Positions 1 through 55,770 of a stretch of 64,000 nucleotides of DNA are shown here, in pieces. Every line of letters begins with the position of its first letter. The first letter of the stretch is position 1. The stretch is from NCBI RefSeq assembly GCF_006345805.1, contig NC_042997.1, positions 209,126,001 through 209,190,000 on the forward strand, given 5' to 3'. Under the pieces are notes generated by a model. It saw only the letters and a program-made list of their open reading frames with translations, did not search any database and had not been told where the DNA came from. Source of the stretch: Octopus sinensis. Lineage: Eukaryota. A program made the position numbers and the translations under genes.

Positions 1-108
1 AACAGCTGTAAGAGATGTTGTCAATTTGTTTTAATTAATGAATAATAAACTAATAATTGTCTCTCTATTTTCTTATATTATTGAGATATATGTATGTATG
101 TATGTATA

Positions 109-530
109 TCATCATCATCATCATCATCATCATCGTTTAGCATCCGCTTTCCATGCTAGCATGGGTTGGACGGTTCAACTGGGGTCTGGGAAGTCAGAAG
201 GCTGCACCAGGCCATCAGATCTGGGTGTGTTTCTACAGCTGGATGCCCTTCCTAACGCCAACCACTCCGTGAGTGTAGTGGGTGCTTTTTATGTGCCAGA
301 CGAGGCTGGCAAACGACCACGATCGGATGGTGCTTTTTACGTGCCACTGGCACGGAAGCCAGTTAGGGCGGCGCTGGCTACAGCCACGTTCAGATGGTTC
401 ACTTATGTGCCACCGGCACTGGTATCACAGCTACAAATTCCATTGATGTTGATAGATTACGATTTTGATTTTGATTTTCTCTTGCCTCAACAGGTCTTCA
501 CAAGTGGAGTTTTGTGTCCCAAGAAGGAAA
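109..530 (-). mobile_element. RTE 3'-UTR fragment (representative of ~20 short copies)
   Basis: (CAT)n tail, CCATGCTAGCATGG palindrome and ACAGCTGGATGCCCTTCCTAACGCC block. Further copies at approx. 1090-1455(+), 1781-2262(-), 7321-7675(-), 9196-9625(-), 10640-11045(+), 13900-14480(+), 29930-30245(+), 35600-36050(-), 41405-41560(+), 42740-42985(+), 43898-44367(-), 46250-46527(+), 52975-53268(+), 59270-59480(+), 63545-63710(-). Confidence 0.85.
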
Positions 531-637
531 GGAAATATGTATGTATGTATGTATGTATGGCCCTGTGTCTATAAGCGTCTAATTATCTATCTGTATATGT
601 CTACATGAAAGGGAAAGTGCTTCTGCATACAACATAC

Positions 638-731
638 CTGGTTCGTGTTGATCTTCCATTCATCATCGACAAGGAAGCGATATAAATATTCGCCAGCTTC
701 AAGGTCAAGGTTGAGCATGAAAGCCTCTTCA
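638..731 (-). CDS. Exon encoding the second part of the CBM48: EEAFMLNLDLEAGEYLYRFLVDDEWKINTNQ
   Basis: Acceptor CAACTTTATTGCAG|T at 731 completes the phase-2 codon from the previous exon; donor CAG|GTATGT at 637. 'L.L..G.Y.Y(K/R)F.VD..W' is the CBM48 signature. At least one further exon lies outside the window. Confidence 0.9.
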
Positions 732-1454
732 CTGCAATAAAGTTGAGAAAAAAACATGAAGTGAATAACAGATATAGGGAGACATAGCTTTTAACATATA
801 TCTTTCTGTTCCTGTGTAACCCCAGGTCAGACATGAGCTGAACAGGCCGGGAAGATTAGAAGCACTGGCATGGTTGGGTGGTTGAGAAACTTGTTTTACA
901 GCCACTAGGTTTCAGGTTCAGTCCTACTGTGTGTCACTTTGGACAAGTGGCTTTTCTTATAGCCCCAGGCTGACCAAGGCCTTATCAGTGGATCTGGTAG
1001 ACAGAAACTAGAAGAAGCCTGTTGTGTGTATATATGTATGTGTGTATGCATGTGTGTGTGTGTGTGTCTATGAATGTTTCGATGCCAATGTCCCCTGACT
1101 GGCTCCCGTGCCAGTGACACATAAAAAGTACCATCTGAACATGGTTGGCAACAGTACCAACTCACTGGCTCAAATGCCGGTGGTATGTAAAAACACCATC
1201 CAAACATGGCCAATGCCAGTGCCTCCTGACTGGCTCCCGTGCCAGTGGCACATAAAAGGCACTATCTGAACATGAGCAATGCCTGGCCCACCTGACTGGC
1301 ACCTGTGCTAGTGGCACGTAAAAAGCACCCACTACAGTCTCGGAATGGTTGGCATTAGGAGAGGCATCCAGCTGTAGAAACATTGCCAGACCTCAGTCAA
1401 ATTGTCCAACCCATGCCAGCATGGAAAACGGACGTTGAAAGATGGTGATGCTGA

Positions 1455-1494
<40 letters not shown>

Positions 1495-1602
1495 TTATAA
1501 AATAGTATAAAATCTTTATAAGAATTTATCAAGTAGTCAGCATGAACAAAACCTCGAAAGGGAAAAATTATAATTATTCTCTTTAAAATATATTTATTTA
1601 TA

Positions 1603-1756
1603 TTAAGGACATTACTACACTAGAATGCCTCACGCTATGAGGGACTATTAAAGTCAAAACTACCATAATAAATACATTTATTATTATTTATTATGGTAGT
1701 CTTAACTTTAATAGTCCCTCATAGCATGAGGCATTCTAGTGTAGTAATGCCCTTAA
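1603..1756. mobile_element. Near-perfect 154-bp palindrome, TTAA-flanked MITE (Kolobok-like termini)
   Basis: ~70-bp arms TTAAGGACATTACTACACTAG.../...CTAGTGTAGTAATGCCCTTAA. The superfamily assignment is inference. Confidence 0.6.
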
Positions 1757-2501
1757 CACACACACACATATATATATATATCATCATCATCATCATCATC
1801 GTTTAATGTCCGTTCTCCATGCTAGCATGGGTTGGATGGTTCGACCGGGGATCTGGGAAGCCAGAAGGCTGCACCAGGCTCCAGTCTTATCTGGCAATGT
1901 TTCTACAACTGGATGCCCTTCCTAACGCCAACCACTCCGTGAGTGTAGTGGGTGCTTTTTACGTGCCACCTGCACAGGTGCCAGGGGAGGCTGGCAACAG
2001 CCACAGTCGGATTGGTGCATTTTACGTGCCACCGGCACGGAAGCCAGTCGAGGTGGCACTGGCATCAGCCACGATTCGGATGGTGCTTTTTACGTGCCAC
2101 CAGCACGGAAGCCAGTCAAGGCAGCGCTGTCATCGGCCACGATTCAGATAGTGCTTTTAACGTACCACCAGTCCAGGGGTCCTGGCATCTGCCGGGTGCC
2201 AGTCATAGGATTGGTTCAATTTCGATTCCGATTTCGATTTCACTTGCCCCAACAGGAGTGCCCTTGAAGAGTTTCATCCAGTTAAGCTATCATTGAACAA
2301 TTGTACTCATCATCATCATCATTATTTGTTTAACATCCATTTTTCCATGCTAGCATGGGTTGGACAGTTTGACTGGCGACTGGCAAGCCAGGAAGTTGCA
2401 CCAGAGTAACCCATCGGAGTAAAATTATTTTTATTGTAACTGAACATAAAAACTAATATAAACATACATTCAGACAGATAGGTGTATTTTTTTGTATGTA
2501 T

Positions 2502-2992
2502 ACTGTAAATCCTCGAGTATAGTCTGCCCTTGAGTATAATATGCAGGGGATTTTTAGGGGGCTGTACTTCTGAAAAAACTAAACCTTGTGTATAATACGC
2601 ACCCCTTCTCTAACTTGAGTCGTGCGAAATTAAGCCAGCAGCACCTAGTCGAACAAATACTTCCGTGCATGCGTAATATAATAATGGTGATGTTCTTAAC
2701 TGTTATATGGGAATGTAAATATGTCTGCAAATTGTTTTTGTTACATGTTATTGTTTACTGCAAGTTATGGATGATTCTTTTATGACTTCATTGCTTTCAG
2801 GCTTAGCTTAAGGTATTTTTGCGTCCAACGTCACAAAATGCCTCAGAATAAACATTTCCAGACAGCAAATTGACACTCGGACCTTGCTTAGAGGATATTT
2901 TTCATTTTTAATCTTGTATATAGTACGCACTAGTGATTTTGACCTTTAAACTTTTGGGGGAAAATATGGATTATACTCGAGGATTTGCGATA
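2502..2992. mobile_element. pogo/Tigger-like non-autonomous DNA element
   Basis: TIR-like ends TACTGTAAATCCTCGAGTATA / TATACTCGAGGATTTGCGATA. Confidence 0.55.
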
Positions 2993-3103
2993 TGTCCGTG
3001 TGTAGATTTCTGAAAGTGAATGAGTGTGTAGACAAATATGCATAAATTACAGCCCCACCCACACACTTTACTTCCAAGAAAAATATCAGAAAACAAAACC
3101 TAC

Positions 3104-3213
3104 ATCTTATTTAAAGTTAAATGTTCCTCAAAATTGTTGAAAGATCCAGCCAACAAGACTTTCTCAGCTTCTTCATCCCAGCGTATCTCAACAGAACACT
3201 TCTCGCCACTGAC
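3104..3213 (-). CDS. Exon encoding the N-terminal half of an AMPK-beta-type CBM48: VSGEKCSVEIRWDEEAEKVLLAGSFNNFEEHLTLNK(I)
   Basis: Acceptor TTTTCGTTGTAG|GTC at 3213, donor AT|GTAGGT at 3103 (phase 2). The 'RW...V.L.GSFNN' pattern matches the start of AMPK1_CBM/CBM48. Confidence 0.88.
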
Positions 3214-3613
3214 CTACAACGAAAATAAACATTACACACAATAAAACCCTGTATGAATGTAGATTATGCCAACAGTCTGGCATTTGTCAGAGATCTTATG
3301 GAAGCTGCCAATATCCTCCGATGTGATCTACAGAAAGAAGATGTCGGTGAAATGGGACAATATATCAATGTTGCTTCAATGGAGAATATGTGTTACAAAG
3401 TACAACCAAGGTGGAACTGAACGCTTGCACCCTCTCGATGGAGAAGAAATAGGACTCCAAATACGTTGCAAATCATATCTCCAAATCAAAGAGTGATATG
3501 AAAACAAGGATTAGTAAATACATTTAATTTTTCAGATAAAAAATGGAAATCTAATCTTCCACAAGAAACTAAAACAGACTCCTTTAAAGCTGTGGTTGAA
3601 TGAATATTAGTTT

Positions 3614-4126
3614 ACATTATTTACATTTGATGGATATTCGTCCTCATCTTGTTTCGGCTGATACACCTTCCAGCCTTCATCAGGTGTCTTGGGGAAATTT
3701 TAAACCCGGGTTCTCATTCCTAAGGTATTTTTCGATGTTGTTGTTGTTATTATTATTATTATTATTACTATTATTATTCAGGTCACTGCCTGGAATCGAA
3801 CTCAGAATCTTGGGGTTAGTAGCCTGCACTCTTAACCACTATGCCATATGCCCATGTGGTTAAGAGCGCAGGCTACTAACCCCAAGATTCCTAGTTCGAT
3901 TCCAGGCAGTGACCTGAATAATAATAAGAATAAGAATAGTAATAATAATAACATTGAAAAATACCTCAGGAATGAGAACCCAGGTTCGAAATTTCCCCAA
4001 GACACCTGATGAAGGCTGGAAGGTGTATCAGCCGAAACGTTGTGTTAACAACAAACAAGATGAGGACAAATATCCGTCAAATGTAAATAATGTACATAAT
4101 TCCTCATCTCTTAAATATAGAACTGA
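3614..4126. mobile_element. Hairpin retroposon: tRNA-derived head + (AAT)n + hammerhead-bearing tail in inverted arrangement
   Basis: Arms 3614-3853 and 3855-4093 are reverse complements. tRNA-like head at 3853-3779 (A box TGGCATAGTGG, B box GTTCGATTCC). Direct repeat AATATTAGTTTA at 3603-3614 and 4127-4138 (TSD-like). Confidence 0.8.
4001..4046 (+). ncRNA. Minimal type I hammerhead ribozyme (Penelope-like type)
   Basis: GACAC-CTGATGA-A-GGCTG-(10 nt)-CAGCC-GAAA-C-GTT-GTGTT. Stem I GACAC/GUGUU, stem II GGCUG/CAGCC, palindromic ACGU mini-stem III, predicted cleavage after GUU (4041). Activity untested. Confidence 0.7.
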
Positions 4127-4294
4127 AATATTAGTTTATGGTTAAATAACATGGACAGTTACAACTTCCAGGTTAAAAAATAACTCTAAATGGCACGTAC
4201 AACACTAGAATACTTTGTGATGCTCTAAATATCTTTTACTGTGAACATGATTAACAAAGAACTTTACCAAGGCATTCCATGGATCACAAAGATG

Positions 4295-5270
4295 GTGGAG
4301 GTAAAGGACATGGACTGCACTCCCTTTCAGTTATTTTTGGGGGTTTATTTTGGTTTTGTTTTGTTTTTTTTCTACAGAAACCTACTTTTTCAACTGCAGT
4401 GATTCCAAATCTGCAAAAAGAAATCTGCATTTCAAAATTTTAACCCCTATTCCACCCCGTAATTTTTCACTTCTTTTAGAAATTTTTTTTGGTGAAATAT
4501 GTAGAAAAAAATACAGAGATTTATGATTGTGAAAAAAAAACTTTTGTAAAATTTCAATTTTTCAAAAATAAATATATAAACATCCCTCCCCTCTGCCAGT
4601 GCATCTGTGACAGAAAGTGAACATGTCGTGGTTGAGGGCCTTAGTTTTTTACACACATACGACAACAAAATGATATTTTTTTCTTTTTTGGTAATTTGTA
4701 TTTCAAAAGTGGATCTTCAGTTTGGCTGTTGTTTCTAGCTTGTCGGACTTTCCAGTTGGAGCAAACTTAAAAATTGACGATTTTGAAAACAACCAAAAAA
4801 CGTTTTCAAAAGTTTAATTTCCCCCCCTCTCCACTCCTCTGGCAAAGAAAAATAAGGGGGTGGCAGAAATTAAAATTTTGAAAACATGATTTGTCATTTA
4901 GCTACTGTTTCTAGCATGTCAAGTTTTCTGTTTAGATACCTTTTACATCTGCTATTTTAGTAGGAGGGGAGTGGTGTTTATTTATTTATTATTTTTTTTT
5001 TTGAAAAATTGAAATTTTACGAAATTTTTTTTCAGAACCATTAATCTCCATATTTTTCTGTATTTCACAAAAAAAAAAATTTCTAAAAAAGTGAAAAACC
5101 GAGCAGGGATCAGATCAGAATTTTGAAATGCCAATTTCTTTTTTTTTTTTGAGGATTCTGAATCTCCGCAGTCGAAAAGATAGGTTTCTGTGGGAAAAAA
5201 GCAAAATAAAGCCAAAAAAAAAACCCACCTGAGAAGGGGTGCAGTCCATGTCCTGTGCCTCCGCCCACAA
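4295..5270. mobile_element. Foldback element with ~300-bp diverged inverted repeats
   Basis: 4295-4592 is the reverse complement of ~4965-5270 (e.g. AGGACATGGACTGCAC at both outer ends). Confidence 0.7.
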
Positions 5271-5431
5271 AGACAATATGAAAGCACAGTCTGAGAATGG
5301 TCACTGTTCATAAAACAAGGAGTAACCAACAGCTGAAGTTTTTCTGTGGTAACCCTCTTATGATAAACAAAGAGGTAAGCCAACCCAAATTTATGTCAAC
5401 CAATTGTTTCAAGAGTGTATTTATATATATA

Positions 5432-6130
5432 TCATCATCGTCATTTAGCATCTGCTTTCCATGCTAGCATGGGTTGGACTTTGCCCAAGCTATTCTTACT
5501 CTAGCAGTTACACTTTCAGCACACCCGCCCCCGCTGCTGACTTGGTCACCTAGGTAACGGAAGCTATCAACTATTTCTAGTTTTTCTCCCTGGAAAGTGA
5601 CAGAAGTTGGTCTCAGAGCATTTTCAGTGTTTATTGTTCCTGAGCATCTGCCACATACAAAAACCATCTTCCTAGTTAGCCATCCTTTGACATTGCTGCA
5701 CCTCTTATGTGTCCATAGCTTACACTTGGTGAATCTTATAGAGTTTCTACCTACACCTTTTTTACAGATCGAGCAGGGCCATCTACCTGAAGGCGTTTGT
5801 GATTTGTCTACCTTCCTACTTATTAGGACTTTGGTTTTAGCTAGATTGACTCTAAGGCCCTTCGATTCTAATCCTTGCTTCCACACCTGAAACTTCTCCT
5901 CCAGTTCTGATAGTGACTCACCAATTAGAGCAAGGTCATCAGCATAGAGGAGCTCCCAAGGGCATCCAGTCTTGAATTCCTCCGTTATTGCCGGGAGGAC
6001 TATGATAAATAGGAGGGGGCTGAGGACTGAGCCTTGGTGGACCCCTACCTCTACTCGGAATTATTCACTGTACTCGTTGCCAACCCTCACCTTACTAGCA
6101 GCGTCCCTGTACATGGCTCGCACAGCTCTC
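5432..6130 (-). mobile_element. RTE LINE copy, 5'-truncated and internally deleted
   Basis: RT segment 5480-6130 matches 54658-55305 and is joined directly to the terminal ~50 nt of the element; (TA)n on both flanks. Confidence 0.88.
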
Positions 6131-6140
6131 ATATATATAT

Positions 6141-6188
<48 letters not shown>

Positions 6189-7921
6189 CACTCTTTTACT
6201 TGTTTCAGTCATTTGACTGTGGCCATGCTGGAACACCGCCTTTTTGTCGAGCAAATCAACCCCAGGACTTATTCTTTGTAAGCCTATTACTTATTCTCTC
6301 AGTCTCTTTTTGCCGAACCGCTAATTTACAGGGATGTAAAGACACCAGCATCGATTGTTGGGTGATGTTGGGGGGACAAACACAGACACAGACACACACA
6401 CACATATACATATATATATCACCATTTAACATCTGTTTATCATATGGGCATGTGTGTAATGGTTCATCAGAAGATTGCATTAAGCTCCCTTATCTGCTTT
6501 CGCATGGCTTCCATGGCTGAAGGCCCCTCCTAATATATTAATATATATTAAAATGATGATAACATGCATAACATTTGTAATAAATATACAAATGTGGAAA
6601 GGTACCAGCTGCAATATTTTGATATTTTGACCCAGAAACTTCTCTTCACAATTTTATCTGACCCAATATAAATTAATGGTAAAATATTTCTTTACTTTCA
6701 CCCATTTAATACAATAAGTAAGTTTATTGCATTGCAATTAAAAACACTTGTGTATTAATAATTGGGTATTATACCAACAGTATATTGGATAAGTATTATC
6801 CCTTAGTGGGTTGGATCCACAACCCCTAACTTACTTGGTGTATATATGCATATATATATATTTCTATATATATATGTGAATAAGTGGCCATTAAATCAAT
6901 AATTATGAAGCATGTGTGTGTGTGTGTATATACATATGTATATAGTGAAAAGATGGATCTCTGAATCCCCAGAAACAGGTGTTGGACTTATAACACCGTT
7001 CTGTCCCCCACTTAAATTTTCTCTGGCATTTTTACTCTGTGTAAGTTGGATCTATTGATATAAATATCTAATATATACTTAAATATTCATCATCTGAAAG
7101 TCTCCACTTTTTGCTTTCTCTCATTTTGCATGTGTACTTATATGCATATTTTGTATTTTAATACCCAAACTGTTATAATTGATATATCTAATTTGTTTAT
7201 ACACATAATTACCTCCCCCTCTCTCTCTCTTTCTATATATATATGTGTGTGTGTGTGTAACATATGGTATAATTATAAACAGAGCAAACATTAGCCATTT
7301 CTCTGCAGACTGAAAAAAATTATCATCATCATCATCGCTTAACATCCACTTTCCATGCTGGCATGGGTTGGACGATTTGACTGAGGGCTGGCGAACCAGA
7401 TGGCTGCACCAGGCTCCAATCTTGATCTGGCAGAGTTTCTACAGCTGGATGCCCTTCCTAATGCCAACCACTCCGAAAGTGTATTGGGTGCTTTTACGTG
7501 CCACTGGCATGGGGGCAAGTCAGGTGGTACTGGCAACGACCTCGCTCGAATCTTTTACACATGCCACCGGCACAGGTGCCAGTAAGGTGATGCTGGTAAC
7601 GATCACGCTCGAATGATGTCTTTTACATGCCACCGGCGCGGAGGCCAGTTGGCTGCTCTGGCAACATCGATTATCGAACCTTATTGGGTTCTCGTCAGAG
7701 GTGTCTACATCATTCTGACAGTCTCCAGAGAAACAAGCAGCCAAACTGTTTATATACTCCACAAATGCAGCAGTTACTCTATGAAGGGGTCCCTAATTTG
7801 CATACCAAAAGAAAACTTAATTTATTCCCTGCTATTTTACTTCTATATCCCCAATCTAAAAGTCATGATGGACATGATCCACCAGTGTCAAAATTCCAAC
7901 AACTGCAACTAAAACACATAC

Positions 7922-8875
7922 CTCAATTAATGGTTCTTCAGTTTCAGGCACTTCTGCTACCTTTTCCTCTTCAGTTGTCTTGGTAACTGCTTCCTCTGTG
8001 TCTAGTTCTTCATTAACCTTACTTTCATCGCCCATTCCTCCTTCTTCATGGCATTCTGATTCGACAGTCACTTCTGGATCTGTAGCATTGCTCGGCTCAG
8101 GCTCTGGTTCTGGCTCCGAAACAGGAATGGGAGCTGATTCTGGAACTATTTCTATGAGAGTAGCTGTCAGGGGTTCTGGGAGTTTGTCCAGAGGTGGTTC
8201 TGGAAGTGAATCTTCTTCTGGGATTGGGTCTGGGAGTGATTCTGGTTCCGGAAGTGATTCTGGCTCCGGGAGTGATTCTGGCTCTGGGAGTGATTCTGGC
8301 TCTGGGAGTGATTCTGGCTCTGGGAGTGATTCTGGCTCTGGGATGGGTTCTGGTTCAGGGATGGGTTCTGGGATTGATGCTGGTTCTGGGACAGATTCAG
8401 TTTCAGGAACAGATTCTGGTTTTGGGATAGATTCCTGTGCTGGAACTGGAGTTGGTTCTGGAACTAATTCTTGCACTGGTTCTGGGACAGGTTCTGGGAC
8501 TATCTCTGGTACAGATTCTACAACCACTTCAGACACTGCTGCTGCCACTGCTGCTGGTGCGGATTCTGTCACAGTTTCGACAGCAGCAACGACCTCCTCG
8601 ACCTTTTCAGACACTTTCTCCACCTCTTTACTCTCAGTTTCACACTTGACTGATTCCTTAACCTGTGCTGCCACAGCATCCACTTCATTCATAATTGTTT
8701 CTGTAAAAGAAGATGGTTCAGCGCTACCATTTTCCGATGCTTGTGACTCAGAAACAGCCGATTCTTGTGCTTTCTGGGAATCTTCTGTAGGTTTGGTGCT
8801 TTCTTTGGCTTCTTCTGCCACTTCGTTTGTTGTGACATCTTCCACAGTTTTCTCTGTGGAATTCTGTGGAGTTTC
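7922..8875 (-). CDS. Large internal exon (318 codons): acidic Glu/Pro/Val/Ser-rich low-complexity linker with PEPESL repeats
   Basis: Lies within ORF 7856..8989. Acceptor TTGATTCTTCAG|GAA at 8875, donor GAG|GTATGT at 7921; 954 nt, phase 0-0, joins in frame to the exons on both sides. Confidence 0.9.
8200..8420 (-). repeat. 18-bp coding minisatellite (PEPESL and variants)
   Basis: Plus strand GGGAGTGATTCTGGCTCT repeated about six times, with degenerate flanking units. Confidence 0.9.
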
Positions 8876-10474
8876 CTGAAGAATCAAAGACAACAACACA
8901 GTTAAAACAAAAGCAACAGCAACAACAACAACACCATAAATTATTATTAAAAAAAATGTAATAGAAAATCCAAACTTCCATTTTGCCAAAGATTTTGGAT
9001 CAAGAAGAATCGGGATAATTGTTGCTTCTGCAAAAGTAGGACAATGAAGTTAGAAGACTTGATTCCCAGCGATGTGGTTTCAAGTTCAGTCCCACTACAG
9101 GCCATGTGGGACAAGTGTTTCTGCTACTGCTCCAGACTAACCAAAACCTTGTGAATGGATCTGATGGATGGAACTGAGGGTTGCCTGTTGTGTTATCATC
9201 ACCATCACCATCATCATTGATTAACGTCTGCTTTCCATGCTGGCATGAGTTGGATGGTTTGACGAGAGTCTAGCAAGGCAGGAGGCTGCACCCGGCTCCA
9301 ATCTGATCTGGCAAGGTTTCTACAGCTGGATGCCCTTCCTAATGCCAACCACTCCGAGAGTGTAGTGGGTGCTTTTTATGTGCCACCAGCATGGGGGCCA
9401 GTCAGGTGACACCGGCATCAACCATGCTCAGATGGTGCTTTTTACGTGCCACCAGCACAGGAGAGAGTCAGGCGGCACTGGCATCGACCACATTCAAATG
9501 GTGCCTTTTACACATCACTGGCATTGGCCATGCATGAATGATTCTTTTTACATGCCATTGGCATTGGCCATGACTACAATTTCACTTGACTCAACAGGTC
9601 TTCTTAAGCACAGCATTTTGCCCGACGATTGAACGGTACTTCTTAACTGGCCAGTTGGTACTTGTGTGTATGTGTGTGTATTTATGACTATGTGTATGTC
9701 TCTGTGAAATTGTTTATTGTCTTGAGGCAATGTGTGTGTGTGATGTGACTAAGATGTATATTCTTATTTGTGTCTTTATGTCCTACCTGTTTCAGTCATC
9801 AGACTGTGGCCATGCTGGAGCACCACCTTCAAGGAATTTTTCTTTTGTCAAATGAATCAACCTTAGTATTTTTTAAAGTCTGGTACTTTTCTGTTGGTGT
9901 CTTTTGCCAAACTGCTAAGTCACCTGTTGTCAAAGGCGGGGGGGGGGGCAACCACCGACATACACATATTCTTATATTCTTTCTTTTATTCATTTCAGTC
10001 AATTTGACTGTGGCCATGCTGGAGCACCACCTTTTAGTCGAACAAATTGATCCCAGGACTTATTTTTTGGAAGCCTAGTACTTATTCTATCAGTTCCTTT
10101 TTCCGAACTGCTAAGTTACAGGGATGTAAACACAACAACATCGGTAGTCAAGCGATGTTGGGCGAACAAACACAGATGCAAAAACATGTATATACACACA
10201 CACAGATATTGCTAGCATCCAACCCATGCTAGCATGGAAAACGGACGCTAAAATGATGATGATGATGATACACGACAGGCTTCTTTCAGTTTCCGTCTAC
10301 CAAATCCATTCACAAGGCTTTGGTCGGCCTGAGGCCATAGTAGAAGACACCATGTGGTTGGTAAGCAAGCTACTTACCACACAGCCACTCTGGGCAATTG
10401 TCTTCTACAATGGCCTCAGACTGACCAAATCCTTGTGAGTGGATTTGGTAGACGGAAACTGAAAGAAGCCTGTC

Positions 10475-10512
<38 letters not shown>

Positions 10513-11956
10513 ATGATGATTATATATAGAGAGCAGCTGATTTCCACAACAGAACATATCTTTTCTTTGTGGTCCCACACAACAATAACTGACTGGTTGT
10601 GTTTTAACTTGGTAGGTGCTTTCATTTTTTAAATTCCATTGGGCTTGACAAGGCCTGTTGAGTCAAGTGGAGTCATAGTTGTGGCCAAAAACAGTACCGC
10701 ATGACTGGCACCCATGCTGCTGGCACATAAAAAGCACCATTTGAACATGGTCATTGCCGGTGCCACCTGACTGGCTCCCATGCTGATGGCACGTAAAAAG
10801 CACCATTCAAGCGTGGTCGATGCCAGTACTACCTGACTGGCCCTCATACCAGTAGCATATAAAAAGCACTCACTACATTCTCAGAGTGGTTGGCATTAGG
10901 AAGGGCATCCAGCTGTAGAAACATTGTCAGATCAGACTGGAGCCTGGTGCAGTCTCCTAGTTTCCCAGACCTCGGTCGAACCATCCAACCCATGCTAGAA
11001 TGGAAAATGGACGTTAAATGACAATGATGATGATGATTATGATGAACAATTTTCTTTTGACCCATCAATCTTAATATATTCAACTTCATCTGTAAGTGTT
11101 TTCTTTTTTGTCATCCTGTTCCAGACTATTCTGGCCACTACATCATTCCTCAAAGGAAGATAATATCAAAAATACATTCTCTTATAATTGGCAAAAATGG
11201 AATTAATACCTTCAGTCTAAGTTTGGCACAGCCTGTCTTTTATGCTGGAGGTTCTTGGTAAGGATCTCTCGTTCTTGAATTCCATGAAGTTAGCCTTCAA
11301 AGTGGGATGTCAAACACTTGTCAGTTTGTTCCTTCTCAATCCACGCCGGGCTCATAAGGGCCGGTTTCCCGGTTTCCTTGACATATAGGTTCCCCACCTG
11401 AACAGGACACCAGTCCGTCGCAGGTGAGCTGCAAGATGCAGGAGGAAAGAGTGAGAGAAAGTTGTGGCAAAAGAGTCAGCAGTAGTTCACCATTACCTTC
11501 TGCGGAAGCAGTGTGGAGCTTAGGTGTTTCGCTCATAAACACACACATCGCCCAGTCTGAGATTCGAACCCGCGATTCCTCGACAGCAAGTCTGCTGCTC
11601 TAACCACTTGGCTGTGTGCCTCCACATACACTTGTCAGTGCTCCATGCCAAGCTTTTGATATGAATTTATTCCCTCTCTGACTGGTGTCTTTCATGCAAA
11701 GTCCACATGTCCCACCTTCCCAGTGTATATATATGCAAGTATAATGTGTATGCATGCATGTATGTATATAAAGGGCATATCTTGTTTCAAGTATATGAAG
11801 GACTTATTGTGATGTGAATACACACACACACACACACACACAAAGGGGCTACAGGACCCACCAAGATATGAATGTATACAGGGTTTACCTTGATGTGAGT
11901 ATATGCAATGTACCTCCCTAATGTATGTATAAGGTGAGTATATATAAAGAACATAC

Positions 11957-12037
11957 CTTGTCTTCTACTGCTTCTGCGACTCCTTCATTTTCCTTGGCGC
12001 TGTCTTTCCGCTTTGCTTTGCTAGTTTTTCCTCCCAT
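11957..12037 (-). CDS. First coding exon of a myristoylated acidic CBM48 (glycogen-binding) protein: MGGKTSKAKRKDSAKENEGVAEAVEDK
   Basis: Minus strand: polypyrimidine acceptor CTTTCTTGTTTTCAG| (exon starts 12042), ATG at 12037, 27 open codons, donor AAG|GTATGT at 11956 (phase 0). MGxxxSK fits the N-myristoylation consensus. Too short for the supplied ORF track. Confidence 0.85.
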
Positions 12038-12519
12038 CCTCACTGAAAACAAGAAAGGAGACAACCATTAAAAAGCAACCATTCCATCTGGACATTAAGG
12101 TCAATCAGCCAACCAGAAGGCCAAAGGATGACACAAATAACCTTTGTGGTCATCTGGCCAGTTAGAAATAATAGCAACATTTCCATTAACTCACACCTTC
12201 CTGTCCTAAACAAGATGACATCTATGCCTGCATGATTTAATGAAGTCGTAGATAAAATGATGGGAAGGTCATGGTAGGAAGACTATTGATGACGGGTCAG
12301 TTTTGTTTGGTTAAGAATATTGCTTCACAACTCTTTGGTTTCATGTTCAGTCTCGCAGTATAACGCCTTGGGCAAGTGTGTTCTACTATAACCCCAGGCC
12401 AACCAAAACCTTGTGAGAAGATTTGGTAGATGGAAACTGAAAGAAGCCTATCAAATGTGTGTGTGTGAGAGCAAGTTTGTATTTCCTCATCCACCCATAT
12501 TCATTCGCTTATGTAGACA

Positions 12520-12790: not shown

Positions 12791-13635
12791 TAATGTTGTT
12801 TGTTTGCAGTTCTGCCACGAAAGCACATCCAGGCTTCTTCGCATCTCTTGACATGTTGTGCAAACTTTGTAAACAAAAGGCCCATTCACAAGGTTTTGTT
12901 TGTGCCCGTGTGTGGACTGTTTGTTGTTCCATAGATTGAGAGATTATTACCTTCCTTGAAAACAAGGGTTGGTGACAGGAAGTGCATCTGGCCATAGAAA
13001 AACTCTGACCCAACAAACCCTTATTTGACTCAAGCAAACAGTTTCAGATCACAAAGCTCTTTGTATATAAGATTGACTTTTACGGCATTTTAAGGCTCAC
13101 AAAAGAATGTTTATAGATAATAAAGTTTGTCAAACACAATAAATTGGGCAGAGATTGAATTTGGTGTTGGTCCTACTGGAAATATTCAAATTGGGAATTT
13201 TGGGAATGTTAACATTGAAGAGGCTACTTATTAGGGCTTTTGGGTCTGTCTCTAGCATAGTCGTTTGTATTTAGACAATTGCAAATGCTTGAATGTAAGT
13301 GCATGATGTTAACTATACATCAATGAAGGATTTTTCCATAAGCATATGTGTCTAAAGAGATATAGATGTATATACAATGTATAAATACACACACACACAC
13401 ACTAATATTGAACAGTGAGAATGAGTGCTCAACACTGCATTGATGGATAAATATTCTTCATCTGTGGCTTAACAATGGTTTCATGTAGAGAGAAATCTCT
13501 CAACAATTAGCAAACTTGCCACTCGGAAATGGTCTTTATATATATATATATATAAAGACCATATATATGTGTGTGTGTGCATACATACATACATACATGC
13601 ATGGATGCAGGTATGTATGCATACATACATACATC

Positions 13636-43206: not shown

Positions 43207-46200
43207 AGCACACCCACTCACACATATACACACACTCATTCATGCACACACACACACACACACACACATTCACTCACTTACATACACATAGGAGCAGGAA
43301 TGGCTGAGTGGTTAAGAAGCTTGCTTGCCATCCATGTGGCTCCAGGTTCAGTCCCACTGTGTGTCACCTTAGGCAAGTGTCTTCCACTGTAGCCTTGAGC
43401 TGACCAATGCCTTGTGAATGAGTTTGCGAAAGCCCATCATATTCATGTGTGCATCTTTGTATCCCCCACCAGTTGACAACTTGACAACTGACGTTGGTTT
43501 GTTTACATCCCTGTAACTCCAGAGTTCAGCAAAAGAGATTGGTTTACAGTGTAAGTAGGGTGAACTTCCCAACCACATGGTTCCAGGTTCAATCCTACTG
43601 CATGACACTTTGGGCAAGTGTCTTCTATTACAACCCCAGGTTGACTAAATGGAATATGTGTGTGTGTACAGCCTTGATTATACATCATGTTATGATTATA
43701 AATCTCATAATATCTCAACTGACATACAAGAGATGTTTATTTCCAGTCTTCCACAGAAAACGTGCCTGGCCTTGCTTGGAAACAGGAAGAGCATTTGGCC
43801 ATAAAAAAACCTGTCTCAATAAATTCCAGCTAATCAATACAAACATTGGAAAAATGGACATTAAAATGTTGTTGAGGATGATAATATATATATATATATC
43901 ATCATCATCATCATCGTTTAATGTCCGCTTTCCATGCTAGCATGGGTTGGACAGTTTGACTGAGGTCTGGCGAACCAGATGGCTGCACCAGGCTTCAATC
44001 TTGATCTGGCAGAGCTTCTACAGCTGGATGCCCTTCCTAGCACCAACCATTCTGAGAGTGTAGTGGGTGCTTTTACATGCCACCTGCACAGGAGCCAGTC
44101 CAGCGGCACTGGTAACAACCTCACTGGTAACGATCACACTCGAATGGTACTTTTTACGTGCCACCAGCACAGAGGCCAGTTAGCTGCACTGGCAACAATC
44201 ACGCTCGGATGGTGCTCTTAGTGTTCCACTAGCACGAATTTGATTTTGATTTCACTTGCCTCAACAGGTCTTTGCAAGCAGAGTATAGTGTCCAAAGAAG
44301 GTAAAGGTAAGCATAAGCAGGCTGGTTACGCCCCTGGCATGGGCCACAAGGTTATGGTCTCACTTGATATATTGATTTGACATATGACTTCTTGTCATCA
44401 CTATTATCTCTGAACCGTCATAATATCAACTGTCCCTGGTGTTCTCTTATTACTCTCCAACTGTGTCCCTTCAACAAACACTCCAGGATATCTCGATTCT
44501 ATAATTCCTACCACCTCTACACTATGACTGCACATATGACACTCTTCTCAGACTGTTCTGTGCATGCTCATTTATACTAACCAGTATAGTACCCTTAGCC
44601 AATTACAGGGGAGTACAGATTCCCTACACAACACCTCCCCCTTTTGAGATTGGCTTTCCCTTCATTTATTATTTTTTTTATTATTATCATTACTTTCTTG
44701 GGGAGAAATAGATAATAATTTTTTTTTGTTTAGAATCAATCTCTGTTGACATCTGTCAACTTTCTCTCCCTAGTTGCGCACTGGTTCAACCCTTTCCTGC
44801 GGCACCGGAATATCAAATATGTCATAAAGTATTTCCATAGGCTCTTCTTACCCTTTTCTATGCTTCTGTGTATCTCTTTTTGATTTGATTTACATGTCTC
44901 TTATGCTCACACGTCTGCCCTTTCACCATGTATATCACTCTACGAAGACGTATTTTGCTATCTGTCCTTGTTCTCAACTTTGTTTCCCATATTTGCACAT
45001 TTTACAAAATACTGCATCACCTATATTGAAACAGTTTGTATTATTAACAGTATTCTTATGTATTTGTTGTTTCCTTCCTGGTAACAATTTATCAAATACT
45101 GATCATACCTTTCTGGCAAGCATTAATTCAGCGGGTGACTCACCCGACTCTGTGTCGGGGTTTGGTGTTATTCTATAGACGCATAAAAATTTTGTCAGTG
45201 TATATTATCCACTAATGATTCATTCCTGGTTTTCCTCAATGCTCTTTTAAACATATCCACAAACCTCTCTGCAAGTCCATTTGACCTCGGATGATATGGT
45301 AGGGTGGTGATATGTTCCATTTGATGCATCTTACAAAAATCTTTGAACTCCTTTGCTGTAAATTACATGCCATTATCCAACACTACAGTGTCCACCACAC
45401 CAAAACATGCAAATATTTCAACAAAAAATTCAGTAGTCTTTTTCGTAGTTTGTTTTCTGCACTTGAAAATTTCAGGCCATTTTGTGTAGCTATCAACCAC
45501 TAACAGATAATATACATCGTTAAGGCCTCTTGCAAAATCTATGTGTAGAATCTTTACTGGAGGTGCCTTAGCTGCCAGGGTGCATCCCCTCCATGCTTTC
45601 ACCAGTTTCTCCAATATCTTCATCCAGTAAATATAACTCCTCATGAAGGCCTTCATCTTTGCAATTCCAGGATGTCTTACATGAAATTCTTTTAGCATTC
45701 AATTTTGTAGTACAACAGATATCACAACCCTCTGATCATACATCAACACATTGTCACACATTGAATAGTATTTCAAACCTGTGTTACACTCAGCAACAAA
45801 ATTTTTTGTATTTGTCTCATTCAATATTATTTTTTTCATTTTCTTAATAAATGCATCTTTTTCTGCTTTCCTTTTTATCCCTTCCAATATGACTGCTAGT
45901 TCCCGCACTACATTGCAGAGAATATTTTTTAATTCAATTTCTGATTTTAGTGCTGCTATTACTGTATCTTCTAGTGGTTCCTTATACTTTGGGATCAATC
46001 CCAGCATGTCCCAATTTTTTCAAAGGCAAAAGTTTCCATTTTGGAATCATAAGGTAGTCTCCCAGCACTGTAATCAATTGGCTGTATGTGTGGGGATACC
46101 TTTTTTTTTATTCCTATATTGTTAACAATAGATGGAGATTTGTCTGCAAGATAAACTTACTGCTGTGCAAGAATTTATGAAATTTTCTTCAATACAAAGA

Positions 46201-46872
46201 TAATGGCTAGTACCTCTTTGTTTATCTGGCTGTATTTTTTTTCCGCCAATCGTTACCAGCATTGCCTTACTGGCACCTGTGCCGTTGGCATGTGTAAAAA
46301 AAAAAGTCAGTACCGCCTGACTTGCCCCCGTGCTGGTGGCACGTAAAAGCACCCACTACACTCTCGGAGTGGTTGGCATTAGGAAGGGTATCCAGCTGTA
46401 GAAACTCTGCCAGATCAAGATTGGAGCCTAGTGCAGCCATCTGGTTCGCCAGACCTCAGTCAAACCGTCCAACCCATGCTAGCATGGAAAGCTGACGTTA
46501 AACAATGATGATGATGATGATGATGAATAGTAATGCACATGACGCATGTGTGATCGGTTTTACTTAACCCTTTTCTAACTTTTGCAAGATTACTGCTCCG
46601 ATCCCAGACTCGCTAGTATCTGATGCTACAATTATATTTGGTTTCAGCTCAAAATGTGCAAGAGATAGCTCTGACATGAACATCTTTTTAATCTCTTGGA
46701 ATGCTTTTTGGCATTCGTCAGTCCAACTCACCATTTCCCATCTTTTTCAGCAGTTTGTTTAAAGGTGCTCTTAGCTCATGCATTCTTGGAATATACATTT
46801 GATAATAATTCGCAAGACCTAAAAAAGCTTTTAAGGTTGTTATATTAGTCAGGGGAGGCATATCTTAAATTG

Positions 46873-47166
46873 GAGGCACATGGCCTAGTGGTTAGAGCAA
46901 TGGACTCGCAGTCGAGGGATCGCAGGTTCGAATCTCAGACCAGGCGATGTGTGTGTTTATGTGCGAAACACCTAAGTTCTACGCGGCTCCGGCAGAAGGT
47001 AGTGGCGAACTTCTGCTGACTCTTTTGCCACAACTTTCTCTCACTCTTTCCTCCTGCATCTTGCAGCTCACCTGTGACGGACCGGCATCCCGTCCCGGTG
47101 GGGAACCTATATGCCAAGGAAACCGGGAAACCGGCCCTCATGAACCAGGCATGGCTCAAGAAGGAA
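46873..47166 (+). mobile_element. tRNA-derived SINE (second family) inserted in the Gypsy pol
   Basis: A box TGGCCTAGTGG, B box GGTTCGAATC; 14-bp TSD CATATCTTAAATTG (46859-46872 / 47167-47180). Relatives at 11326-11627(-, 12-bp TSD ACACTTGTCAGT) and ~26070-26365(+). Confidence 0.85.
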
Positions 47167-47205
47167 CATATCTTAAATTGCGTTTGCCTTCGACAGGTCC
47201 AGTCG

Positions 47206-47712
47206 TCATCCGTTCCTGTCAATAATTTGTCCAAAATACTTAATTTCTGATAAGAAAAATTCACATTTTCTCTCACTTATTGTGAAGCCGTAATCTCTTA
47301 TTTTTGCAAAAACACACTTCATGTGCTCGATATACTGATCGTGGGATTCACTTTTAATTAATATATCATCCAGGTATGGAATTGCAAATTCACAGTCTGC
47401 TAACATTGTATCCATAGCTTGTTGAAAAATTGCGACTTTTATTCCAAAAGCAAGGCGGTTAAATTTGTACAACCCTTTGTGTGTGCTTATGATTAACAGC
47501 TTGGAACATTCTTCGTCTACCTGCAACTGTAAATACGCTTCCGATAAATCCAATTTAGAAAAGAGTTTGCCTCCATTAAGCTTTGCAAAAATCTCCTCTG
47601 GACTTGGTAATGGATAGTTATAAGTTTTCAGACGTTCATTAAATCCTGTCGGAAAATCAGCGCAGACCCTTACTTTATTTTTATTTTTTTGTACACAGTT
47701 GGTGCTGCCCAT
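47206..47712 (-). pseudogene. Gypsy reverse transcriptase fragment
   Basis: VRVCADF..YPLPSPEEIF..FSKLDLSEAYLQ..GLYKFNRLAFGI..IPYLDDILI; interrupted by a SINE and by frameshifts. Confidence 0.9.
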
Positions 47713-51125: not shown

Positions 51126-51980
51126 TCATCATCATCAGTGTCCGTTTTCCATGCTGGTAGGTTGGACAGTTTGATTGAGGTTTGGGGAGCCAGCAGCTGC
51201 ACCAGGCTCCAGTCTGATCTGGCAGTGTTTCTACAGCTGGATGCTCTTCCTAACGCCACCCACTTCAAGAGTGTAGTGGGTGCTCTTTACATGCCACCGG
51301 CACAGGAGCCAGTCACGTGGCCCTGGCATTGATCACATTTGGATAGTGCTTTTTACGTGCCACTGGCACAGGGGCCAGTCAGGCAGGCCTGGCATTGATC
51401 ACATTTGGATAGTGCTTTTTATATGCCACTGGCATAGGGGCCAGTCACGTGGCCCTGGCATTGATCACATTTGGATAGTGCTTTTTACGTGCCACTGGCA
51501 CAGGGGCCAGTCAGGCAGGCCTGGCATTGATCACATTTGGATAGTGCTTTTTACATGCCACTGGCACAGGGGCCAGTCAGGGGGTACTGACATCGGCCAC
51601 ATTCGGATGGTGCTTTTTACAGGCCACCAGCAAGGGGGCCAATCAAGGGGTACTGGTATCAGCCACAATCAGATGGTGCCTTTTATGTGCCATCGGCATG
51701 GGAGCTAGTCTGCGACTGGCTTCCGTGCCGGTGGCACATAAACTACACCAATCTGACCGTGGCCGTTGCCAGCCTCGCCTGGCACCTGTGCAGGTGGCAC
51801 GTAAAAAGCACCCACTACACTCACGGAGTGGTTGGCGTTAGGAAGGGCATTCAGCTGTAGAAACATTGCCAGATAAGACTGGAGCCTGGTGCAGCCTTCT
51901 GGCTTCCCAGATCCCCGGTCGAACTGTCCAACCCATGCTAGCATGGAGAACGGACGTTAAACGATGATGATGATGATGAT
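51123..51980. mobile_element. Two head-to-head RTE 3' fragments; the left one carries a 66-bp tandem array
   Basis: Minus copy 51123-51700 has units starting at 51293, 51359, 51425, 51491, 51557 and 51623; plus copy 51705-51980. Confidence 0.85.
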
Positions 51981-53344: not shown

Positions 53345-55472
53345 TCATCATCGTCGTTTAACGTCCGTTCTCCATGCTAGCATGGGTTGGACGGTTCGAC
53401 CGGGGTTCTGGGAAGCCAGAAGGCTGCACCAGGCTCCAGTCTAATTTGGCAATGTTTCTACAGCTGGATGCCCTTCCTAACGCCAACCACTCCGTGAGTG
53501 TAGTGGGTGCTTTTTACGTGCCACCTGCACAGGTGCCAGGCGGGGCTGGCAACGGCCACGGTCAGATTGGTGTATTTTATGTGCCACCGGCACGGAAGCC
53601 AGTCGAGGCGGTGCTGGCATCGGCCACGAGTCGGATAGTGCTTTTTACGTACCACCAGACCAGGGATCCTGGCTGGTTCAATTCGATTTCGATTTCGCTT
53701 GCCCCAACATGTCTTCACAAGCAAAGGGGGTTGGCAAGGGTGCCTGTCGTACGGTCGCATTGGAGTATTTTACGTGCCACGGCCACGAGTCGGATAGTGC
53801 TTTTTACGTACCACCAGACCAGGGATCCTGGCTGGTTCAATTCGATTTCGATTTCGATTTCGCTTGCCCCAACATGTCTTCACAAGCAAAGGGGGTTGGC
53901 ATGGGTGCCTGTCGTACGGTCGCATTGGAGTATTTTACGTGCCACGGCCCCGAGTCGGATAGTGCTTTTTACGTACCACCAGGCCAGGGATCCTGGCTGG
54001 TTCAATTCGGTTTCGATTTCGATTTCGATTTTGCTTGCCCCAACATGTCTTCGCAAGCATGGGGGTTGGGATGGGTGTCTGTCGTCGGATGAGGTTCTAT
54101 ATCGACTTCGCTTGCCTCAACCGGTCTTTGTGTCCAAGGGAGGAAAGGCATTCATAAGTGGGCTGGGCTCACTTGTCCTGCCTGGTCTTCTCACGTACAG
54201 AATATTTCCAAAGGTCTCGGTCTCTGGTCATTTCCTCAGTGAGGCCTAAAGTTCGAAGGTCGTGCTTCACCACCTCGTCCCAGGTTTTCCTGGGTCTACC
54301 TCTTCTACGGGTTCCCTCAACTGCTAGGGATTGGCACTTTCTCACACACCTATCTTCATCCATTCTCGCCACATGACCATACCAGCGCAATCGTCTCTCT
54401 TGCACACCACAACTGATGCTTCTTAGGTACAACATTTCTCTCAAGGTGCTAACGCTCTGTCGAGTATGTACACTGGCATTACACATCCATCGGAGCATAC
54501 TGGCTTCATTCCTCACGAGCTTACGCATGTCCTCAGCAGTCACAGCCCATGTTTCGCTGCCATGTAGCATGGCTGTTCGTACACACGCATCATACAGTCT
54601 GCCTTTTACTCTGAGCGAGAGGCCTTTAGTCACCAGCAGAGGTAAGAGCTCCCTAAACTTTGCCCAGGCTATTCTTATTCTAGCAGTTACACTTTCAGCG
54701 CACCCACCCCCACTACTGACTTGGTCACCTAGATAACGGAAGCTATCAACTACTTCTAGTTTTTCCCCCTGGAAAGTGACGGAAGTTGTTTTCTGCAGAT
54801 TTTCGGAGGTTAATGCTCCCGAGCATCTGCCACATACAAAAACTATCTTCCCAGTTAGCCTACCTTTGACATTGCTGCACCTCTTATGTGTCCATAGCTT
54901 ACACTGGGTACATCTTATAGAGTTTCTACCTACACCTTTTCTACAGATCGAGCAGGGCCATCTTCCTGAAGATATTTGTGGATTGTCTACCTTTCTACTT
55001 ATTAGTACTTTGGTTTTAGCTAGGTTGACTCTAAGGCCCCTTGATTCTAAACCCTCCTTCCACACCTGGAACTTCTCCTCCAGTTCTGATAGTGACTCAG
55101 CAATAAGAGCAAGGTCGTCAGCGTAGAGGAGCTCCCAGGGACAGCCTGTCTTGAATTCCTCCGTAATTGCCTGGAGTACTATGATAATAGGAGGGGGCTG
55201 AGTACTGAACCCTGGTGGACCCCAACCTCTACTTTGAATTCTTCTGTGTACATGTTGCCAACCCTAACCTTACTTACGGCATCTCTGTACATGGCTTGCA
55301 CAGTCCTCACCAGCCATTCATCTATCCCTAGTTTCCTCATTGACCACCAGATAAGGGATCGGGGAACCCTATCAAAAGCTTTCTCCATGTCAACGAAAGC
55401 CAGGTACAGGGGCTTATCTTTGGCTAGGTATTTCTCCTGCAGCTGCCTTACCAGGAATATAGCATCAGTGGT
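53345..55472 (-). mobile_element. RTE-clade LINE, 5'-truncated within RT, with 3' UTR and (GAT)n tail
   Basis: RT motifs [24 protein letters not shown] and LLYADD, with one frameshift near 55185. ORF 54169..55065 ends GRPRKTW..DR..W. The 3' palindrome TCCATGCTAGCATGG lies just before the tail. Confidence 0.92.
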
Positions 55473-55473
55473 A

Positions 55474-55770
<297 letters not shown>

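Follow-up and report, generated by a model that had tools for sequence, protein, structure and literature searches.

A 64,000-nucleotide stretch of the Octopus sinensis genome (NCBI RefSeq assembly GCF_006345805.1, contig NC_042997.1, positions 209,126,001 to 209,190,000 of the forward strand), which is called the window here, carries near its position 1 a minus-strand gene for a three-part protein. The protein consists of a putatively myristoylated, polybasic head, a long acidic spacer and a carbohydrate-binding module (CBM) of the kind present in the beta subunit of AMP-activated protein kinase (AMPK). The gene is real and apparently unannotated, and, as judged from its sequence, it is a new member of an undescribed mollusc family that is derived from AMPK-beta and independent of the kinase. 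No published description of such a mollusc family was found in the literature.

Four exons of this gene were read on the minus strand and were then joined by a script. The spliced product is 1239 nt long and encodes 413 amino acids; it contains no stop, and the frame remains open throughout. The junctions 11957/8875, 7922/3213 and 3104/731 all have canonical AG/GT borders in the right phases, and both exons and junctions lie exactly where a first-pass annotation, made from the DNA letters, had placed them. The start codon is found in a context with A at -3 and G at +4, and a further, non-coding exon upstream of exon 1 is possible. The protein starts with MGGKTSKAKRKDSAKENEG and ends with ...VSGEKCSVEIRWDEEAEKVLLAGSFNNFEEHLTLNKIEEAFMLNLDLEAGEYLYRFLVDDEWKINTNQ. 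Its CBM is incomplete solely because the window ends, at position 1, before the gene does. A profile search of the translations of positions 1-637 revealed no CBM-like or next-exon-like piece there, nor anything like AMPKBI, the domain through which the beta subunit joins the alpha and gamma subunits. Judging from its homologues, the gene would have its last coding exon beyond the window edge, with about 17-20 codons (P-x-x-C...G-x-x-N-N-V-x-V-V, then a stop); this length follows from the gastropod orthologues described below, since the last exon has 20 codons and a stop in both Biomphalaria and Bradybaena.

The succession of a MGGKTSKAKRK head, an E/P-rich acidic stretch and a CBM48, as was proposed at the outset, is borne out in all its parts. 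In the head, MGGKTSK matches, as a sequence motif alone, the PROSITE-type N-myristoylation pattern G-{EDRKHPFYW}-x(2)-[STAGCN]-{P}, and the first 15 residues of the protein include six basic against two acidic ones. The product of exon 2 accounts for 318 residues, among them 79 E, 53 P, 36 V and 32 S with a single aromatic, and residues 1-351 have a net charge of -73. This spacer is predicted to lack a fixed structure. An 18-bp tandem repeat was detected in this exon (8225..8361, minus strand; 7.6 copies, 90% match by Tandem Repeats Finder), which encodes about six PEPESL units. The spacer has apparently been lengthened in frame by this repeat not long ago, and the length of the repeat probably varies among individuals. 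Exon 2 is open on the plus strand too (7980-8879, 299 aa, GS-rich), and this second frame was rejected as a compositional mirror image that has no splice or homology support. No transmembrane segment was found in the window protein, whose top 19-residue hydropathy average is 1.54, in a stretch broken by Glu. The canonical core of an LC3-interacting region (LIR), [WFY]-x-x-[LIV], is likewise absent from the region before the CBM in this protein and in five of its relatives.

As for the C-terminal part, a Pfam scan identified residues 352-412 as AMPK1_CBM (PF16561) with E=1.1e-15 and 58 bits, the cut-off being 26.8 bits, over profile positions 2-62 of 85; a search with this very model had been suggested by the first-pass annotation. 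AMPK1_CBM was the scan's only match in the window protein, and the BASP1 and MARCKS families gave none up to E=1. Among solved structures, the CBMs of AMPK beta2 and beta1 are the best matches to the window CBM (E=5e-10). Exons 3 and 4 also match the family CBM profile separately, with 42 and 50 bits from a profile that included the window's own CBM. In an AlphaFold model of the Biomphalaria orthologue, residues 1-300 are without secondary structure and mostly of low predicted local distance difference test (pLDDT) score, and a beta-sandwich occupies residues 306-381. Through Foldseek, this sandwich was found to resemble, over the full length, the CBM structures of AMPK beta1/beta2 (2f15, 4yee, 1z0m) with E=5e-8, a target TM-score of ~0.7 and 40% identity.

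The sugar-contact positions were taken as Trp100, Lys126, Trp133, Leu146 and Thr148 in beta1 numbering (PMC6274970). In the beta1 CBM, glycogen binding is known to be abolished by W100G and by K126Q and to be weakened when W133 is mutated (PMC6274970). All the gastropod members examined retain Trp100, Trp133 and, as K or R, Lys126. In the window gene, exon 3 carries Phe at the Trp100 position, and exon 4 includes Arg at the Lys126 position as well as the conserved Trp133. Glycan binding by the window CBM is thus plausible. The Ser108 position varies in the family, and the stretch GEHQYKF, common to the four AMPK-beta CBMs compared, reads GEYLYRF in the window gene and GE[YH]LY[KR]F in the family.

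In a whole-protein search, low-complexity candidates dominated. The sole true match was a Lottia gigantea protein (LOTGIDRAFT_238680, P0002, XP_009049162), in which MGNKLSGPKKDKDDKKK is followed by about 280 acidic P/E-rich residues and then by the CBM. Another candidate from that search, P0001, was set aside as a PE-rich compositional match and not a relative. A search of the protein database with a two-sequence CBM alignment gave no matches. The relatives were obtained by an exhaustive HMMER search with the Lottia CBM, the best 150 matches of which were listed; it covers the gastropods seen, and an orthologue that has diverged as far as the window's would rank lower than these 150. Among the matches listed, P0059, P0081, P0086, P0097, P0107 and the partial P0058 have a single CBM at the extreme C-terminus, with 45-55% identity. 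Their sources are Biomphalaria glabrata (XP_013067142), Lymnaea stagnalis (CAL1536256, P0086), Bradybaena similaris (BFZ11830) and, for the partial one, Plakobranchus ocellatus (GFO48696), together with two transcript contigs from assemblies of public sequencing runs. A metagenome scan with the exon-4 motif added no family member and returned only canonical AMPK-beta genes, bacterial multi-CBM proteins and GH13-like enzymes.

Neither a whole-protein search nor a query made of exon 1 and the CBM found a protein matching the window gene in a database of 5.8 billion clusters. The gene is therefore apparently unannotated in its own lineage. Exact look-ups of the open reading frames (ORFs) of window exons 2 and 4 found neither of them on record. 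The names that the members carry in databases were assigned automatically: NCBI lists the Biomphalaria protein as 'cell surface glycoprotein 1-like', and in UniRef it is 'AMPK subunit beta-1'. An early warning that automated annotation might mis-call such a gene has thus proved apt. A secreted shell-matrix or cell-surface glycoprotein, as the former name would imply, was considered and is unlikely, since the N-terminus is not hydrophobic, a signal peptide is missing and the name derives from low-complexity similarity.

All seven family proteins in which the N-terminus is present, the window's included, fit the Gly2 myristoylation pattern and have six Lys/Arg in the first 15 residues. The region before the CBM spans 228-351 aa in these seven, with a net charge of -22 to -73 and 0-3 aromatics. 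The six relatives keep MG[GNA]K[ST]SK at the N-terminus, and the spacers are conserved by composition, not by sequence. The window gene and its gastropod relatives thus have in common a MG-x-K and polybasic head, an acidic, aromatic-poor spacer of 230-350 aa, a C-terminal AMPK1_CBM, the exon plan and three intron positions. They differ in that the window gene has the longest and most acidic spacer, with the recent PEPESL repeat, as well as the shortest first exon (27 aa) and Phe in place of Trp at Trp100. The heterobranch genes carry one additional small exon before the CBM, whereas the window gene does not.

The window CBM scores 77.7 bits against a leave-one-out gastropod family profile and 52.9 bits against an AMPK-beta profile built from four CBMs, two of them human. 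In a neighbour-joining analysis, the seven sequences nearest to the window CBM are all seven family members, and it joined AMPK-beta in 0 of 1000 bootstrap replicates. CBM identities alone are not decisive for membership; the gene structure is more so.

Two of the gastropod gene models need correction. The annotated last exon of Lottia XP_009049162 (HYFCSHYWIEIALCKILQMKPMIL; L001:12908-14858) is probably mis-called. If the exon-5 donor at 12943 is read through instead, the product ends in ...GTENNVIVVS-stop, in agreement with the family consensus and with the C-terminus of every other member. Lymnaea P0086 has, at residues ~270-320, just before the CBM, a basic insert of ~50 aa with aromatics (ITDLLQHAGKSRP...SKRNIDQ) that no relative has; the gene model has probably retained an intron there. 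The sole LIR-like core in the family sits in this insert.

What sets the family apart from AMPK-beta is its end. In six relatives, Pfam detected the CBM in its entirety (profile 1-81 of 85) but neither AMPKBI (PF04739) nor any other domain, whereas the control betas P0120 and P0145, which had come up in the same HMMER search as the relatives, each have both CBM and AMPKBI. Wherever the C-terminus of an orthologue could be seen, the protein stops 5-11 residues past the CBM. When the AMPKBI profile was run against six-frame translations, no AMPKBI-like piece was found in the whole 64-kb window, nor in the Lottia, Biomphalaria and Bradybaena loci with their downstream flanks. The exons of an AMPK-beta locus, which served as the positive control for this profile, score 71.5 and 44.5 bits; AMPKBI exons would read 'PPxLPPHLLQVILN...HVMLNHLYALSIKD'. 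As the AMPKBI/ASC domain is missing, proteins of this architecture would be unable to join alpha and gamma. A contig of 2561 nt without introns (L002) encodes P0059 in full; the frame has stops ahead of the ATG and is closed by another directly after the CBM. Since this intron-free contig has the acidic region and the CBM in one frame, at least one species probably expresses the long acidic form that terminates with the CBM. The contrary scenario, an ordinary AMPK-beta in which the big exon is normally skipped, is thus unsupported.

A further protein of similar build was met in a metagenome contig (Ga0256793_1002761, L012:1-432), where a eukaryotic partial ORF has a CBM48 and then an immediate stop (...GEYFYKFIVDDKWMVSDEEPILNDIEGHINNYLQIL); the region before it is basic, not acidic. 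This may be another, independent CBM48 protein without the ASC domain.

The intron positions tell of the origin of the family. In the window gene and in those of Lottia (L001), Biomphalaria (L003) and Bradybaena (L005), a first exon with the MG-polybasic head ends in phase 0 and is followed by one large acidic exon. In the same four genes, a phase-0 intron lies 8-9 codons before an E-x-x-W motif, a phase-2 intron splits the codon after L-x-K, and another phase-0 intron follows W-x-x-N-x-x-[QLM]. Exon 4 has 94 nt in both the window gene and Biomphalaria, and its end position is identical in all the genes compared. Both introns within the CBM recur, in the same position and phase, in two canonical AMPK-beta genes, one from the flatworm Sparganum (L004) and one from a metagenome contig (L010). 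In these canonical genes, the exon after the second CBM intron continues into the linker and AMPKBI, whereas in the family a stop follows the last CBM strand. Among the matches listed for the family profile, the canonical AMPK-beta CBMs come next after the family members, with 83-87 bits against at most 64 bits for the remainder. As the CBM introns match those of canonical AMPK-beta genes in position and phase, the family would be a truncated AMPK-beta paralogue. The best reading is that AMPK-beta was duplicated and that one copy retained both the myristoylated head and the CBM, shed the alpha/gamma-binding domain and gained a large acidic exon. The first-pass annotation had left the choice between a derived AMPK-beta paralogue and a stand-alone glycogen-to-membrane tether; the former agrees with the origin suggested by the nearest CBMs and shared introns, and the stand-alone build of the latter with the architecture.

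With regard to the canonical genes themselves, the Sparganum proliferum AMPK-beta model starts with MERAVDKPKV and not MG..., one of its introns seems to have a GC donor, and its first exon is possibly mis-annotated. L010 and L011 are both metagenome contigs, and the canonical AMPK-beta gene there shares both CBM intron positions and phases.

The coordinates of all features are collected in Table 1. The window is eukaryotic DNA of ~40% G+C, rich in microsatellites and in repeats resembling short interspersed nuclear elements (SINEs). One SINE-like element with internal tandem units of 63-68 bp recurs in both orientations in the introns of the gene and elsewhere in the window, and it yields many spurious ORFs, such as '...FTCHQHGSQSG...'. 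The retrotransposon tail fragment within intron 2 is, by eye, highly similar to the remnant at 54169-55754. No other cellular gene was recognised in the 13-64 kb part of the window, and an Rfam scan of the whole window gave no matches.

Table 1. Features of the window, with exon and intron sequence at splice borders separated by a slash (LTR, long terminal repeat).
Feature	Position	Strand	Description
Coding exon 1	12037-11957	minus	27 codons, MGGKTSKAKRKDSAKENEGVAEAVEDK; ATG start, Gly2 N-myristoylation motif, polybasic cluster; phase 0 end AAG/gtatgt
5' leader	12038..12043	minus	six bases, TGAGG preceding ATG, directly after acceptor-like ttttcag
Intron 1	8876..11956	minus	gt...ag; packed with SINE-like repeats
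Coding exon 2	8875-7922	minus	954 nt, 318 codons; ttcttcag/GAA to GAG/gtatgt; phase 0 at both ends; acidic E/P/V/S-rich spacer
Intron 2	3214..7921	minus	retrotransposon tail fragment 5464-5886 and SINE-like repeats
Coding exon 3	3213-3104	minus	110 nt; gttgtag/GTC to AAG AT/gtaggt; VSGEKCSVEIRWDEEAEKVLLAGSFNNFEEHLTLNK and two bases of next codon; first half of CBM48
Intron 3	732..3103	minus	
Coding exon 4	731-638	minus	94 nt; attgcag/T GAA to CAG/gtatgt, phase 0 end; (I)EEAFMLNLDLEAGEYLYRFLVDDEWKINTNQ; second CBM part
Intron 4 start	1..637	minus	gtatgt...; mainly SINE-like repeat
SINE-like copies	1082-1329, 1951-2171, 7491-7649, 9368-9511, 10692-10869, 51280-51708, 53374-54249		
Retrotransposon remnant	54169-55754		RVT_1, PHD-like zinc finger; broken by long (TA)n/(TATATA) microsatellite
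LTR-retrotransposon pol fragments	45363-47712	minus	RVT_1 (E=5e-22), integrase zinc-binding and core domains

The exhaustive CBM search also brought up proteins of quite another kind. Bacterial and metagenomic proteins in which 3-18 CBM48-like repeats stand in tandem take its top total scores (P0003-P0057) and dominate the 150 matches listed. Many of these are ~480 aa long with four repeats, and one from Candidatus Epulopiscium (WP_305767917) has 18 matched stretches in 1812 aa. Their architecture is unrelated to that of the mollusc family.

The explanation favoured here, which we hold to be reasonably probable, is that of an uncharacterised mollusc family that arose from an AMPK-beta gene, is without the ASC domain, possesses an acidic spacer and would hold glycogen near the membrane apart from AMPK. 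The gene could instead encode a functional AMPK-beta, canonical or with a long linker, the alpha/gamma-binding domain of which lies just past the window and the acidic exon of which is an optional insert. Such a view draws on the AMPK-beta type of the CBM, on Gly2 myristoylation, which is likewise a beta feature (PMC6274970), on the phase 0 at both ends of exon 2, which makes it skippable in frame, and on the position of the 3' end beyond the window. It is nevertheless very unlikely, since the window CBM scores 25 bits higher with the ASC-less family and the orthologues of the same plan all stop past the CBM, with no AMPKBI in the protein or downstream. Furthermore, the transcript-type contig L002 includes the acidic region, the change from GEHQYKF to GEYLYRF sets the window gene apart, and the Ser108 position is not conserved. 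It is hardly credible, on the other hand, that the locus is non-functional and consists of a chance frame in low-complexity DNA next to a decaying AMPK-beta pseudogene fragment. Four successive pairs of canonical splice sites, all correctly phased, and 413 codons without a stop speak against this, as do the exon plan, intron phases and exon sizes shared with three gastropod genes and the conservation of the N-terminal motif and of the core CBM residues. The repetitive nature of exon 2, open on both strands, would fit with decay, as would a large database without a matching protein and a window CBM that is the most divergent in the family.

The remaining alternatives accept the gene and concern its function. 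It may be a cortical membrane protein similar to BASP1, MARCKS or GAP-43, in which the CBM no longer binds glycogen and has been repurposed for a protein or another glycan. The active parts would then be the acidic tail and the myristoyl-basic head, with the head binding acidic lipids. We regard this as unlikely. MGGKTSKAKRK followed by a long acidic tail rich in P/E/A/S resembles BASP1, the window gene has Phe at Trp100, and Leu146/Thr148 are not conserved in the family; moreover, residues 68-123 of AMPK beta1 are known to bind the glycogen debranching enzyme independently of glycogen (PMC6274970). However, the gastropods examined keep Trp100, Lys126 (K/R) and Trp133, which suggests selection on the sugar site; Phe is still able to stack on glucose rings, and the Pfam families of BASP1 and MARCKS yielded no match as far as E=1. 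The protein might also be an STBD1- or Atg45-like glycophagy receptor that joins glycogen to Atg8/LC3 on autophagic membranes, but this seems rather improbable. The absence of a canonical LIR core before the CBM in the window protein and five relatives counts against it, with the Lymnaea instance falling in a probably mis-annotated insert, and so does the absence of a transmembrane segment. Its attraction lies in the logic of the parts, which is like that of STBD1, N-myristoylated and membrane-bound with a terminal starch-binding domain (PMC5358331), and in Atg45, a yeast glycogen autophagy receptor with a PF16561 domain (PMC11145338).

Several points weigh against the favoured explanation of an ASC-less tether family. 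The last exon of the window gene lies outside the window, and its own stop codon is taken from the orthologues. The AlphaFold confidence for the CBM is moderate (pLDDT 60-72, from an alignment of 8 sequences). Family monophyly has a bootstrap of 29% (neighbour-joining, 62 columns), and the window CBM is the most divergent member, with 40-49% identity to the family against 31-43% to AMPK-beta. At the sugar site, the window gene has kept Trp133, has Phe and Arg at the Trp100 and Lys126 positions, and has its Leu146/Thr148 positions off the window; across the family, Leu146 and Thr148 are not conserved. Glycogen affinity may hence be reduced, or specificity altered, in the window gene.

In Src, MARCKS and BASP1, myristate plus basic residues bind acidic inner-leaflet membranes. 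In the mechanism proposed for the tether family, N-myristoyltransferase would put a myristate on Gly2, and this myristate, together with the six nearby Lys/Arg, would keep the N-terminus on such membranes in a similar manner. Ser/Thr inside the basic cluster might act as a phosphorylation switch. The spacer, with a net charge of about -73, would be repelled by the membrane and behave as an extended entropic linker with a mean length of ~15-20 nm by polymer scaling and a contour of ~120 nm. The C-terminal CBM would then bind alpha-glucan. In this way, glycogen particles would be held near the membrane but at a distance, independent of AMPK kinase. Membrane anchoring and glycogen binding are both predicted, and the tether function is a hypothesis. 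A bolder version can be put forward tentatively, as a possibility that we do not expect to hold in full. Molluscs would, on that account, own an AMPK-independent glycogen-to-membrane tether made from a truncated AMPK-beta and a polyanionic spacer, as a convergent counterpart of STBD1; a myristoyl-electrostatic switch would attach and release glycogen, and a repeat-expandable spacer would set the distance from the bilayer. If true, glycogen-rich molluscs would gain a means of positioning their fuel stores.

To our knowledge, animal glycogen-binding modules of the AMPK-beta type are known solely within AMPK kinase. As far as could be found, the family would be the first case of such a module freed from the kinase and lipid-anchored via a long polyanionic linker. 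If glycogen is indeed bound, it would be a second, independently evolved membrane tether for glycogen beside vertebrate STBD1. The three-part build makes the anchor, the spacer length and the binding module separately testable, and the family clearly illustrates how a conserved regulatory subunit came to lose a domain and acquire an exon. Mis-naming of its members as 'AMPK beta-1' or 'cell surface glycoprotein 1-like' may also inflate the counts of mollusc AMPK subunits.

Among known systems, the AMPK beta subunits (PRKAB1/PRKAB2; Sip1, Sip2 and Gal83 in yeast) share with the window family the Gly2 myristoylation motif and the CBM48/AMPK1_CBM fold, with ~40% identity and a target TM-score of ~0.7. 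They differ from it by the presence of AMPKBI/ASC, the absence of which was checked in the orthologues, and by the spacer between Gly2 and the CBM, which is ~70-80 aa in AMPK beta as against ~350 aa in the window protein. BASP1, MARCKS and GAP-43 join a myristoylated basic head (palmitoylated in GAP-43) to a long acidic disordered tail, and the predicted layout of the family is similar; those proteins, however, have no detectable homology to the window protein and no carbohydrate-binding module.

That a PF16561 CBM can work outside the kinase complex is known from the yeast proteins Atg45 (Yil024c), Crp1 and Mdg1 (PMC11145338). Crp1 co-localises with glycogen synthase at the cell periphery, and Atg45 takes glycogen to the vacuole (PMC11145338). 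These proteins are fungal and of independent origin, with another domain order and other partners, and are without such a myristoyl/polybasic head or acidic spacer. The vertebrate STBD1 (genethonin-1) is membrane-associated and ends in a C-terminal glycogen-binding module (PMC5358331, PMC11145338). The analogy with STBD1, already drawn in the first-pass annotation, is closer than was stated there, as STBD1 itself is N-myristoylated (PMC5358331). STBD1 has a CBM20, a transmembrane segment and an Atg8-interacting motif, whereas the family has a CBM48 and a long polyanionic spacer, no transmembrane segment and no canonical LIR. Going by this likeness of parts, STBD1, though not homologous to the mollusc family, is its closest functional analogue.

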